Notes: generated by a model from the letters alone, not told the origin. DNA of 64,000 bases from Perkinsus chesapeaki ATCC PRA-425 (GCA_013115145.1 JAAPAO010000028.1:59580-123579); one strand, 5' to 3'; shown: positions 1 to 60,383, counted from the first letter of the stretch. Made by a program: numbers and translations.

Positions 1-1422
1 AGCTACGACAAGTGAGCTTCTGCTGCTACTGCAGCTGGCCAGACGGTGCTGTTTTTATAAAGTGTTTCAGGACACTGAAGATATATGATTTGACCAAACC
101 ACACCAGAACAAGCGTGCTCAGCATAATGTTGTCGACGTAAGGAGGAGGAGCTGCTAGAAGGATGATGGCTCCTCTTTATTAACCTCATCATCAGATGTA
201 TCCTATTAATAAAGTGCAAGTCCATCCCTGTGGCGACTTTGTATATGTCGGCACGCTACACAGAGTCATCCGCCTGTACGACACGAGAACGCTGCAATGC
301 TTTTCGGCCTATTATGGTGGAGCTTCTGGTATCGGCGGTGGAGGCGGCCAGCATCATAATGGCAGCGTAAGTATCTTAAATTCTCCGTAGTGCGAAAGAT
401 ACGCGTATCTTTGCAGGTTCTCGACATCGCATGTGCGAGCGATGGTAGCGTGTTCGCCTCTGCCGGCAGTGATGGTAGGCAGCGATGATAATTCCGTCAC
501 GCGCCACGAAATGTCTTAGGTCACGTGCATATCTGGGATGGTGTATCCAATCGTCTAATCAACAAACTCCATGGTGCACCGGGAAGCGGTGGATCGCTGA
601 TGAAGCCTCACTCGGGCCACCCAGTGTTCACAGTTCAATGGAGTCGTAATTGCCGATACCTCCTTACTAGTGGAGGGGACCATAGAGCTCGACTGTGGGA
701 TATGAGGACTGGGAAGGAGCTGTTGGTCTATTCTGGAGCAACCACATCGACAGACTGTTCTTTTATGACCGCCACTTTTGCTGGGAATGAACAGTAGCAT
801 GGCCGTCACCGCGCCGGGAAATTATTCTCTTTTGCAGATACATTGCAACGAGCTCTTCGAGGATCGGCGAATCTGATATGTGTCTGATAGACTCCCTAAC
901 AGGTGCTCATCATCATACCGCCTCCGCCACTGAGTTGTCCCGTTTGTGTTCACGTCTTGCGTCTTAGGGGAGGTTTTGGTTCCAGCAGTGGGAGGCCATT
1001 CCATCCCAGTCAGAGCTGTCGCCGCCTCTCCTGTTGATAAGACTATCATTACTGGTGAGTAACTGCTGCCGTTTCGCACTGTGAAGATTTGGTATCTTGT
1101 TGTTAGGTTGCGATGACAATAAAGTGAGGTTCTTTGATATTGTTAAAGGCACTAAGAATATGTACCGACGCATTTTGTACGCTTTCTGCCAGATGACATT
1201 GTGCTCAGATATGAGATGGAGGAGGAGGGCATCACAGGAATATCTCAGAGCCAAGCCGCTGCTGGCATGGAGATGGACGAGACTGGTGCAGCTGTGATGC
1301 CATCCGAGCAGGGAGCAACCACTGCTGCTGCGGCGGCGGCGGCGAGGGGTAAGGGAACAAGGGCAATGCTGGGAGTGGTAAGTTCTTCATTGTTAGGGTT
1401 TGTTGAACACATCGGCACTTAG
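1..1422 (+). CDS. CSTF1: Cleavage stimulation factor 50 kDa subunit (WD40), 5' end outside window, multi-exon
   Basis: Spliced exons read TLKIYDLTKP, INKVQVHPCGDFVYVGTLHRVIRLYDTRTLQCF, HIWDGVSNRLINKLH and WSRNCRYLLTSGGDHRARLWD. These match CstF-50 WD repeats as recalled. Short GT-AG introns include 368-416, 473-519 and 1055-1106. Confidence 0.85.
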
Positions 1423-1862
1423 TGGATAACGTTTCATCCATATCCTTGTTTCGTTCATACCTATGCAATGCTGTGCGGGTGGAAAAACAAGAGTCACGCA
1501 CCACGAAATTGTCAAGACGCTTTGTCTTATCCGGCCTTGATTTTTCTGATGTGAATGCCAACGCCGAAGTGGAATTGTAAAAGATACGAAGATTGGTTAT
1601 TGTATCGTTACGCCTTGGTTTCGAAACTGGCCTAACCAATGTACTCCACAGTGGTAAAGGGAGACTGTGCGCGCGTGCAAGAATCGGCGTCACCAGCTGA
1701 CGTCACCGCGAAAAGGCTTCTCCTTCCACTCCTCCTTTCCTGCGCGCATTGAGCTAATGCTGTGATTGTCGCTGGGGGTTAGATAGTTGTGAAGATAACT
1801 GTGAAGAGCAGTGTGGATGTTATTAGTGTTTGGGGTGTAGGAATTAGTTCCAGTGATTGTAG

Positions 1863-57305: not shown

Positions 57306-57868
57306 TGTTCACTGCTGGCATTATCAACAAATATGCTGCTTCGACTTGTGGATTTTTAATGAGGCTGTCCAACATCTTGGTAGAAAGAACGGCGATGGCA
57401 GAAAGCTCTTGGCTCTCTGATCACTTGAAACTCATAATGATATTTCAAAAGGTTGATGAGTTGGAGGTCCGGCGCGATCTCAGTTTGACGTAACATTGGT
57501 TCCTTTGTATTGTATAGTCGAACCACCACCTGTGCCGGTATACAGTAGCAGCAATCTCACTGTAATTTACCGTCCAACCGTGTTCGAGTGCCGTACTAAT
57601 CCGCCTCCTGGAAGGATCTTATAAGAGTTCATTTTCCCTGGGGCACTTTGTGGTAGTATTACTGCTTTTCAGGCCCGGGAAGAGGCGGAGCTGGAGCGAC
57701 GGCTCAATGCTTTGTGATGATAATGCATTTACTGTTGCTGCTGAATTGTTTTTGTAATTTGTCAACCACCGATTGGATACCATTTTTCGCCTCCCATCGA
57801 CTTTGCGTTCTTCTTCATTGTTATATCGCCTAGGTAGCACTTCCTCTTTTCCCCTCCTCCTCAACCGA

Positions 57869-60383
57869 ATGTTTGGAGGTGGTGGTGGTTCTGGTTCGAG
57901 CAGCAGCAGCAGCAGTAATATATTCGGTAGTAGTAGCAGCCTTCTCCGTCTCTGCTTTTTACCTAGTTTTCTCAGGCTCTGCCCCATCCACCGGCGGTGG
58001 TCTCTTTGGCTCTACCCCCTCGACTGGCGGTGGCCTATTCGGCAGTACTCCCGCTAGCAGTAGTAGTGGCTCCGCCGGGGGTCTCTTCGGTAGCGGCGGT
58101 GGCTCATCGGGCACTGGTGGGCTGCTTGGCTCAACGGCACCATCGAGCGGCGGTTCCCTCTTCGGTGGTGCAGCACCCTCCAGTAGCAGCAGTACCGGCG
58201 CCAGTGGTATTTTCGGCTCTGCGCCTGCTCCGTCCTCCAGCGCTAGCGGTCTGTTTGGCAGTACGCCGGCGGCGGGGGCGAGCAGTGGGGGCTCAGGAGG
58301 CCTCTTTGGGTCGACAATGCCACCGGCATCCAGTGCCGGAGGAGGAGGCTTGTTTGGATCATCGGCACCTTCGTCGTCTGCCAGTAGCCTATTCGGTGGA
58401 GCGCCGCCACAGTCTGCCAGTAGCAGCTCAGCTGCTGCCGGAGGGCTCTTCGGATCGTCCTCCTCGAGTGGTGGTGGCCTCTTTGGTAGTATGGGCATGG
58501 GCTTCACCGATTCGGACAATGCTCTTCCAGGTGCCGCTGCTGGCCCAGCGTCGAGTGCTGCTAGTTCGAGCTCCAGCGGTGGCGGTCTATTCGGTTCTGC
58601 CCCAGCAGCCTCCTCTAGTGGTGGCCTTTTTGGTACCTTACCATTCCTCTGCTAACTCTTATTCCTACCAGGTACCACTGCCCAGCCCTCTAGCTCCTCC
58701 AGCGGTGGCGGCCTCTTCGGCTCATCGGCCCCAGCTTCCTCCTCCAGTGGTGGTGGCCTCTTTGGCTCATCGGCCCCAGCTTCCTCCTCCAGTGGTGGCG
58801 GCCTCTTTGGCTCATCGGCCCCAGCTTCCTCCTCCAGTGGTGGTGGCCTCTTTGGCTCATCGGCCCCAGCTTCCTCCTCCAGTGGTGGTGGCCTCTTCGG
58901 TAGTTTGCCGGTCATCATTAATCAATCATCGAACCTCTCATCCTCCCATAGGTTCAACTGCTCAATCCTCGAGCTCAGCTGGAGGCGGTGGCCTCTTCGG
59001 CACCGCCGCTTCCACTGGTAGCAGCAGCAGCAGCTCCGGCGGTGGCCTTTTCGGTGGTGCGTGCTAGCCTCCTGCCCACGAGAAATATCATCGTCCCTTT
59101 TCAGCTTCGTCAGGATCTTCGTCATCAAGTGGCGGTCTCTTCGGCGGTTCCGCGGCCGCCAGTAGCAGCTCCGGCGGTGGCGGCGGAGGCCTGTTTGGAG
59201 GTGGGGCATTTCACCTCCTACCGGAGGCTTTAGTCTCCTTGGACTGTCGTCCAGGCTTCCTCTGATGCAGGTTCATCGACTGCTGCTGCAGGGGGCAGCA
59301 GTCGCGTCGGTGTGCTAGAGCACAGGAAACTCACAGATGTCCTCACGCTATGGGATCAACGGTGTGACTACCTCAATCAGCAGCACCTGGGATTCATTTG
59401 CTCATTGCCTCATTAGGCTGTCCCTACAGGCTAATCAATTCAACCAGTACGGGTCGGAGATCCTTGCCGTGGACTCGAAGCTGATACAAGCCACCAGAGA
59501 GCTCCGGTCGCTCGACGCCCAGCATGTACAGTTGAAGAACACCGCTCAAATGGTAGTAGTGGCGGCAGGCTTATACAGAGCTCGACAGTGCCAAGCCAGG
59601 TGGACTCGGCATTAGCGTCTATCGCAGGCCAACAACAGTCGTTGGGTGAGCTGCTGGAGGATGTCCAACAGGCTGTATTGAAGGAGATGCAGGGGTCCTC
59701 GACTAAGTGGGCATTACCCGCCATTTGAAGGGCATCTAGTCATGTTAGTATCGGCTCTGGCCCGGCAGCTGCTGCGGCAGCCTCAACTCTGTTATCTGGC
59801 GTTCAGAGGGGGAAGAATGAAGCGGCCAGCGGTAGGCCGAGGGTTCGAATCCCGGACGGGGCATTTTCGTTGCTTTCAGTCGGCGATCGAGCGGTGGCTG
59901 TGTCTGGGCAGTTGGATGATATGGAACGTCAATTAGAGGAGCTGATGGCTACGACCAAGACAGTAAGTGCACGATGTGGCTTATCTATTCCTCGGCTTAA
60001 CCCTTCTCGATGCCCCTCCTGAACTCCTCCTCTTACTGGGAAAGTAGCTTGGGTAGCATCGGTTCCGTTCGCCGAACTTGCCGGACTTTGGTAGTTTGGA
60101 TCATTGCTGCTGGAACTCTGGCCTGGATGATGGTGGGAGCAGCCATGATGGTGATTATTATTTTGTCAGTTGGCCGAGTCGAGTTATTCCAGCAACGGAG
60201 GCGCTAGTAAGGACCCGACAGCTCTGCAAAGTCTAGTTAAAATATTGAATATCCATCAGAGATCACTGGAACAGATAACAGAGCAGACCAGCGAGTTGCA
60301 CAGGTAGTAGCATGGCGGGGGCCTCTTGTACAGGAAGGAGTGACTATTATAGGACTCTCACCAGCCTGGAGAGGTCTGGGTGA
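57869..60383 (+). CDS. NUP62: FG-repeat nucleoporin Nup62/Nsp1, multi-exon
   Basis: Many GGGLFG repeats, then coiled coil LTDVLTLWDQ, QANQFNQYGSEILAVDSKLIQ, GQLDDMERQLEELM and LQSLVKILNIHQRSLEQI. End approximate. Confidence 0.85.
58697..58890 (+). repeat. 45-bp coding tandem repeat (SSAPASSSSGGGLFG, ~4 copies) in NUP62
   Basis: Near-identical nucleotide units read directly. Confidence 0.85.

Follow-up and report, generated by a model that had tools for sequence, protein, structure and literature searches.

What do the very short introns of Perkinsus hold besides splice signals? Perkinsus is a parasite of clams and oysters and the closest sister lineage of the dinoflagellates, in which gene regulation is poorly understood, and very short introns are usually seen as spacers that carry splice signals only. 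We analysed one 64,000-nucleotide (nt) stretch of P. chesapeaki ATCC PRA-425 (GCA_013115145.1 JAAPAO010000028.1:59580-123579; the window), together with about 135 kb of other Perkinsus DNA, and found short sequence modules that recur at unrelated loci: an element of about 22 nt (family A) in introns, fragments of tRNA genes, also in introns, and a 24-nt element (family B) in spacers. A preliminary description of the window had placed all of these in at least nine tiny introns, and had proposed either an introner or micro-MITE (miniature inverted-repeat transposable element) process or DNA-level binding sites parked in introns. Nine is too many, because both P. chesapeaki copies of family B are intergenic and one family A copy lies in an intron of about 225 nt; the broader statement is correct, in that sequence beyond the splice signals recurs among short introns here. 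Our preferred answer, which we put forward tentatively, is that the modules are DNA docking sites in old introns and spacers, with some copies under selection. Full-text literature searches found no paper on Perkinsus intron modules or tRNA-derived introns.

Family A cores in introns of unrelated genes

The 21-mer TCTTTATAGTGCGAAAGATAC matches the window four times at three or fewer mismatches (positions 382, 16556, 20431 on the minus strand and 26401 on the minus strand), as against no match in 100 dinucleotide shuffles. Comparison of the window with itself gave a 25-nt exact repeat (388-412 and 16562-16586) and a 23-nt exact inverted repeat (16554-16576 and 20453-20431), with E-values of 5e-5 to 4e-6 for these 23- to 25-mer pairs, confirming the recurrent core that had been described in introns in both orientations. 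Non-tandem repeats of at least 20 nt are otherwise very few in the window, namely the family B pair and one paralogous 20-mer (30498-30517 and 33848-33867, exact, with similarity downstream), which looks like paralogous exon ends around an intron and not like an intron module. A search with shorter words added weaker family A copies at 23444-23474 and 24196-24226, in introns of RPN10.

Introns outside 15.2-17.9 kb are predictions, and the counts given here used 170 confirmed or predicted introns. The gene finder that we built recovered 9 of the 11 RNA-supported introns of the GGACT-domain gene; at the same time, it over-predicts (wrong strand, CAG repeats), and we kept only strands backed by public annotation or Pfam. 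When the 8-mers common to the 170 introns were ranked on either strand, family A words came out on top once CAG-type low-complexity words had been removed, and these words are rare outside introns.

A family A element consists of the arms ATCTT and AAGAT around a conserved, asymmetric centre, CGCACT. We built a covariance model from thirteen copies and ran it on the window and the ~135 kb of other Perkinsus DNA, where it found no copy beyond its training sequences. The six matches in the window (copies 1 to 6 in Table 1) lie without exception within introns, confirmed or predicted, which account for 22% of its length (chance 0.22^6, or about 1e-4 by our own arithmetic), and three copies run in each direction relative to their host genes. 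Family A in the DNA sampled thus comes to six P. chesapeaki copies, located within 0.4-26.4 kb of the window, plus a single orthologous site in P. olseni and another in P. marinus. The core of copy 1 is followed by an 18-bp palindrome, AAAGATACGCGTATCTTT, at 395-412, and the same palindrome accompanies copy 2 at 16569-16586.

Several identities for family A were considered and set aside. Rfam gave no meaningful match for the P. chesapeaki or P. marinus versions, and a known RNA family was rejected. The reverse strand, CGCACTATAAAG, can be read as a TATA box or TFIIB element, a reading rejected on the orthologs, which have CGCACTGCGAAG or CGCACTGGGAAG instead; an E2F-like reading was dropped, the orthologs misfitting the E2F consensus.

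Could the resemblance be due to chance, or to the shared composition of AT-rich short introns? The introns are short and T-rich near their 3' ends, and a 19-mer of the core has one chance match in a very large metagenome collection, inside a 499-amino-acid open reading frame (ORF) on an unrelated contig. Against this stand the four matches in the window where shuffling gave none, the E-values of the exact pairs and conservation across species (see below), which together refute an explanation that we now consider scarcely credible.

Age of the host introns and signs of family A copying

Two small public sequencing runs behave as RNA: their contigs match 15.2-17.9 kb at 100% identity and contain eleven GT-AG joints, including those of 16233-16287 and 16540-16590, hosts of a tRNA-type module and of copy 2; neither run reaches 18-21.2 kb, where copy 3 lies. 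Exon flanks conserved in three species bound the introns 20418-20461, 24188-24233 and 25032-25119. For comparison we used the syntenic loci of P. olseni (L005, L007, L008 and L009) and P. marinus (L003, L006 and L010), reached through the PUF and RPL11 proteins. The first PUF matches, L001 and L002, are paralogous loci without synteny and served only as extra Perkinsus DNA. An ORF at 21274-21924 was dropped as an ortholog anchor; no relatives of it were found and it is antisense to the G-patch gene.

The three species are far apart. In the long PUF exon, amino-acid identity is 90-93% among them, while at 4-fold sites the identity is only 0.32-0.36 when P. chesapeaki is set against either of the others and 0.47 for P. 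olseni against P. marinus, with about 0.26 expected from composition alone (our own calculation). These values place neutral sites near saturation and make P. chesapeaki the outgroup to the other two. Most orthologous introns share nothing above the null (longest common word: mean 5.2 nt, 99th percentile 9).

The intron positions themselves are old. The hosts of copies 2, 3 and 6, and those of the tRNA-type modules at 16233, 25032 and 10844, have their positions in common with P. olseni and/or P. marinus, so that none of the six tested host introns is absent in relatives, as an introner would be. Nor is a whole intron shared between loci: the family A copies have 23-33 of 44-51 nt in common and are unrelated over the first 13-17 nt, donor included. 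No target-site duplication is found beside the 23-nt core (flanks GTGT/GCGT in copy 2, TAAA/CCTC in copy 3), and there are no terminal inverted repeats of MITE type, the ends pairing only over TCTTT/AAAGA (5 bp). The introner or micro-MITE process proposed in the preliminary description therefore fails for the copies that could be compared, because the positions are old, no target is duplicated and the 5' splice site always lies outside the common part. The refutation which that description had itself named, host introns at ancient conserved positions, is what the comparison shows, and the cores of copies 2 and 6 are absent from the orthologous introns. One intron of the window does show clean presence and absence: the 46-nt intron 18756-18801 of RPL11 (minus strand) is missing from P. 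olseni and P. marinus (exon ending CTCA and continuing AGGTCAAGG); it carries no family A core.

Copy 3 alone is kept in all three species, where the same Pkinase intron holds ATCTnYCGCACTnnnAAGAnTT at ~80% identity, CGCACT and AAGA being invariant. Two P. olseni isolates (L007 8702-8732 and L009) differ at two positions of the 5' arm (GCATCTGCC vs GTATCTTCC) and are identical in the centre and 3' arm. The P. marinus intron has reached about 205 nt by tandem expansion, with 5.6 copies of a 32-nt unit built on family A (L006 3064-3242). Another intron of the P. marinus Pkinase gene, orthologous to window 19740-19814, also contains a tandem-repeat array, a much longer one (L006 about 1705-2450; 785 vs 75 nt aligned); its predicted start lies in sequence conserved in three species and its true length is uncertain.

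Other copies fared differently. The intron of copy 2 has nearly the same length in P. olseni (51 vs ~47 nt), where the core is missing and only two GTATCTT words are kept; that of copy 6 is common to three species and lacks the core in P. olseni and P. marinus; and orthologs of copy 4 keep the arms, ATCTTT..AAGAT, and not the centre. Copies 2, 3, 4 and 6 are the four that can be tested in this way, the ortholog alignment of copy 5 being unreliable. Copies 1 to 3 of P. chesapeaki share states unlike those of copy 3 in the other species, and their identity at positions that differ between species at copy 3 suggests recent copying.

Such copying raises the alternative that family A is selfish or a by-product: a tiny duplicative element, MITE-like or left as a templated insertion when DNA is repaired or the template is switched at a hairpin. 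It would have spread through DNA that tolerates it, existing introns for example, and would look conserved because of repeated copying or gene conversion and not because of a function. Identical 23- to 25-mers in three introns, in both orientations and within 20 kb, speak for this alternative, as do the crowding of five of the six copies into 10 kb (16.5-26.4 kb), the P. chesapeaki-specific states of copies 1 to 3, the perfect 18-bp palindrome that doubles the end of the element in copies 1 and 2, the tandem amplification in P. marinus and the absence of the core from the orthologous introns of copies 2 and 6. It accounts poorly for the lack of target-site duplications and of real terminal inverted repeats, for an intron length that is nearly equal with and without the core, for the ~135 kb of related DNA free of further copies, and for copy 3, whose place is the same intron in three species nearly saturated at 4-fold sites and whose centre is invariant even between P. 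olseni isolates. We consider such a selfish or by-product origin unlikely.

tRNA-type modules and family B

The preliminary description had also reported tRNA fragments in three introns (16233-16287, 25032-25119 and, putatively, 59832-59879). All three are as described, and a fourth was found at 10844-10902; all four lie in the sense orientation. Three of them could be compared between species, and all three keep their box regions at the orthologous sites. In the 16233 intron, P. olseni has an identical 13-nt B box (GGTTCGATCCCTG) and an identical CATTTTT, with a compensatory change in the T-stem and divergent flanks. The tRNA-Met-like intron at 25032-25119 is matched in position by introns of P. 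marinus and P. olseni and has conserved blocks around both boxes, the B-box block being partly kept, and both blocks of 10844-10902, including the GGTTCG block, are conserved in P. olseni. At the level of sequence, a B-box consensus is thus kept while the flanking tRNA sequence decays, which is the pattern of an extra-TFIIIC (ETC) site.

Neither Rfam nor ARAGORN called a tRNA at the intronic modules. Nor do these modules resemble tRNA-derived short interspersed nuclear elements, being fragments of 30-70 nt, mostly 3' halves, whose only tail is a T-run and which have no flanking duplications. A strict T-arm scan of the window gave five matches where 2.0 were expected, which is not significant alone. 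B boxes also occur outside introns, and DNA without a gene model holds a good T-arm (GCGGG TTCGATC CCTGG) and an acceptor-like tail at 31475-31491, with no tRNA called. A genuine tRNA-Met gene at 63933-64000 (minus strand), cut by the window end (apparently the contig end), resembles the tRNA-like intron of RPN10. The tRNA-Ala that ARAGORN reported at 18990-19074 was rejected as a false positive in an RPL11 coding exon, where Rfam makes no call. Several introns, from all three species (window, L005, L006, L007 and L010), contain a further module, GCGTATCTTAGGTYGAAG, in one orientation or the other, for example at 20581-20623 and in the L007 ortholog of window 20750-20802. Its GGTYGAA/GGTTCAA part resembles a worn B box, and more modules may therefore be tRNA-derived.

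The family B pair, 24 nt with one mismatch, is real, though in P. chesapeaki its two copies lie in spacers and not in introns as had been supposed. Its pattern is ATCGATYA, 3 nt, RGGCGYGCG. The spacer placement of copy 2 is supported by an ATG in the RPN10-PUF spacer region common to all three species, and the core of that copy is conserved in the RPN10-PUF spacer of P. marinus (L006 9214-9233). In P. olseni, family B does occupy a true intron, in the GGACT gene (L007 12951-12970); the orthologous P. chesapeaki intron, 16415-16473, which is confirmed by RNA, is without the module.

Table 1. Modules and genes of the window. Gene rows follow the public gene table, Pfam marks and alignments.
Feature	Position	Strand	Host or place	Remarks
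Family A copy 1	core 382-402	+	intron 367..416 (50 nt), WD40-repeat gene	forward; intron placed from reading-frame continuity only
Family A copy 2	16554-16576	+	intron 16540..16590 (51 nt), GGACT-domain gene	forward; splicing in RNA contigs of two runs
Family A copy 3	20431-20453	+	intron 20418..20461 (44 nt), protein kinase gene	reverse; exon flanks conserved in three species
Family A copy 4	26398..26428	+	PUF intron 1, about 26361-26585 (~225 nt)	2 mismatches; 31.5 bits
Family A copy 5 (weak)	23444..23474	-	predicted 62-nt intron 23435-23496, RPN10	26.3 bits; predicted only
Family A copy 6 (weak)	24196..24226	+	46-nt intron 24188-24233, RPN10 (minus-strand gene)	24 bits; exon flanks conserved
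tRNA tail intron	16233..16287 (55 nt)	+	GGACT gene region	T-arm (B box GGTTCGATCCC), 3' acceptor strand, T-run; RNA contigs show splicing
tRNA-Met-like intron	25032..25119 (88 nt)	-	RPN10	resembles whole tRNA-Met gene; A-box-like and B-box-like blocks
Putative tRNA-tail intron	59832..59879 (48 nt)	+	nucleoporin-like gene	T-arm (GGTTCGAATCC), 3' acceptor strand, T-run; in frame, open
tRNA-like predicted intron	10844..10902 (59 nt)	-	UCH gene	GTGGTA and GGTTCGATTCC blocks; new to this analysis
Family B copy 1 (AAATCGATCATCAGGGCGCGCGCT)	7204..7227	+	just past predicted UCH stop, ~280 nt upstream of next gene start	by our own gene model
Family B copy 2	26123..26146	+	205-bp spacer between diverging RPN10 (start 26051) and PUF (start 26257)	
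WD40-repeat gene	1-1500	+		
UCH	about 7259-12520	-		
Small genes, including cyclophilin and a ubiquitin-like gene	12.5-15.4 kb	+		
GGACT-domain gene	15523-17726	+		
RPL11	18.4-19.3 kb	-		
Protein kinase (Pkinase)	19411-21003	+		
G-patch/RRM	21179-22762	-		
RPN10 (VWA)	22905-26051	-		
PUF	26257-29357	+		
Assembly gap (N run)	10131-10229	.		also in public record; part of no element

The assembly gap lies within the UCH gene, with the same 40-nt tandem repeat on both flanks; it lies 600 nt or more away from each of the elements, and none of the claims relies on continuity there. At 13033-17726 the public annotation fuses cyclophilin and GGACT domains into a 609-amino-acid product; the counterpart in P. 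olseni is four separate genes, RNA contigs support a separate GGACT gene, and this gene is missing from the syntenic place in P. marinus. The interval from PUF to the amino-acid transporter measures ~3.7 kb in P. marinus (L006 12381-16112) vs ~22 kb in P. chesapeaki (29.4-51.3 kb), where it contains several predicted multi-exon genes and a second transporter paralog. Between the tandem transporter paralogs, 118 nt are 98% identical (50834-50951 and 52450-52567), far above the rest, which may reflect gene conversion. A 45-nt repeat array in the nucleoporin-like gene (58458-58904) is also present in P. marinus.

Possible docking sites or splicing aids, and known systems

How might these modules be understood together? 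In the reading that we tentatively prefer, old micro-introns and some intergenic spacers would hold short cis-elements from a small repertoire, consisting of tRNA-gene remnants with a kept B box (and sometimes an A-box-like block), family A and family B, and the modules would work mainly at the level of DNA, with proteins docking on them: TFIIIC on the B boxes, as at ETC sites, and some factor, possibly a dimeric one, on family A. Family B may be a promoter or spacer motif. Selection would keep some copies for very long, while others would be lineage-specific or recently copied, with occasional duplication in tandem (in P. marinus) or into nearby existing introns (in P. chesapeaki) and no creation of introns. 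Some modules have clearly been under long-term constraint.

Action on DNA is favoured because family A runs in either orientation even though its centre is asymmetric, because its RNA structure is weak, because the B box is a known DNA site and because family B is not confined to introns. The DNA-level binding sites of the preliminary description thus agree with both orientations, with the conserved copy, with the spacer positions of family B and with the weak folds; we infer the binding itself and the action on DNA, as well as the direction and mechanism of copying.

At the same time, several results weigh against docking sites. All six family A copies are intronic and none falls in the unassigned 23% of the window, which would suit a role in RNA or splicing equally well or better. 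Only one of the four testable copies keeps its centre across species. The covariance model recovered nothing new in ~135 kb, so that family A is local in the sample and no genome-wide code is visible, and gains of family A are inseparable from losses because P. chesapeaki is the outgroup. The word GTATCTT, present in family A and in the palindromic extension of copies 1 and 2, is enriched in genes of all three species and lies there in the sense more often than in the antisense orientation (38 vs 17, p = 0.006, with orthologs included in the counts). Finally, the 5-bp stem of family A, TCTTY/RAAGA, is paired in 89% of cells, with T-A in P. chesapeaki replaced by C-G in the others; only 1-2 of 500 shuffles reach the observed score, percentage paired and changed-cell values, and 13-14 of 500 reach the two counts, of pairs and of types. 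Such covariation is equally expected from a hairpin or from a symmetric site for a protein on DNA.

These results bring in an RNA-level alternative, in which sense GUAUCUU and its partner AAGAUAC would serve as pre-mRNA hairpins or binding sites and help the recognition of weakly signalled micro-introns. Besides the covarying stem and the purely intronic placement of family A, it would explain why the sense strand of genes has GTATCTT at 5-6 times the frequency of a random 7-mer, why this word is the part retained in orthologs of copies 2 and 4 and of the Pkinase intron at 19533, and why the forward copies 1, 2 and 6 have an extra sense GTATCTT 3-5 nt upstream of the 3' splice site; the donor and acceptor consensus is weak, and no branch-site motif was found when we looked for one in the introns. 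It is harder to reconcile with the half of the copies in which the transcript carries the complement of CGCACT, with folds of the host introns that are no stabler than shuffles (z +0.2 to -1.4), the lowest-energy fold of copy 3 not even using the family A stem, and with the occurrence of family B and B boxes outside introns too. The sense excess of GTATCTT, moreover, comes only from the window and its syntenic loci and is missing in the unlinked loci L001, L002 and L011. On balance we regard a splicing aid as a serious if somewhat unlikely rival, and note that the DNA, RNA and selfish readings are mutually compatible.

If docking sites they are, what would follow? Some Perkinsus micro-introns hold blocks that have outlasted a divergence deep enough to leave 4-fold sites near random, and some of these blocks are the promoter box of tRNA genes; as docking sites, they would tie tRNA-gene remnants and a TFIIIC-type architecture to intron content in the sister lineage of the dinoflagellates. 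A bolder extension, that thousands of Perkinsus micro-introns house a genome-wide docking set of TFIIIC B boxes left from tRNA genes and a few palindromic motifs such as family A, and that this set organises chromatin or transcription, strikes us as improbable; if it held, then in this compact, trans-splicing genome selection would act on the content of introns too, with modules passing from one intron to another over time. More generally, repeated intron sequence need not mean an introner, and the ortholog test tells the two apart.

The known systems closest to the tRNA-type modules are the ETC sites of yeasts and mammals, which are likewise isolated conserved B boxes (GGTTCGAnnCC) away from a working tRNA gene, often beside or inside Pol II genes. 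The likeness extends to the decayed tRNA surroundings and the intact box in Perkinsus. The Perkinsus boxes differ in lying within tiny spliceosomal introns, in being accompanied by a T-run and the 3' acceptor strand of the tRNA, in the sense orientation of the four examples, and in being recognised here from sequence.

Family A recalls the introners of Micromonas, Aureococcus, dinoflagellates and Amoebophrya, where near-identical sequence also fills much of the short introns of unrelated genes in both orientations; Amoebophrya, a relative of Perkinsus, has true introners with direct and inverted repeats (PMC7789003). The Perkinsus host positions, however, are ancient, their borders lack direct repeats, the 5' splice site is not shared and the copies are few and local. 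With MITEs and other small palindromic repeats, family A has in common that it is short, non-coding, capable of forming a hairpin, found in either orientation and expanded in tandem in one species. Yet at 23-33 nt it is far below MITE size, it has no target-site duplication, its arms pair over 5 bp, and one copy has long been conserved in place. Conserved intronic cis-elements, such as splicing enhancers and structured elements, offer a last parallel, with short conserved blocks in otherwise unconstrained introns and, here, the sense excess of GTATCTT; family A departs from them in its independence of orientation, in its weak predicted structures and in belonging to a set whose modules are found in spacers as well.

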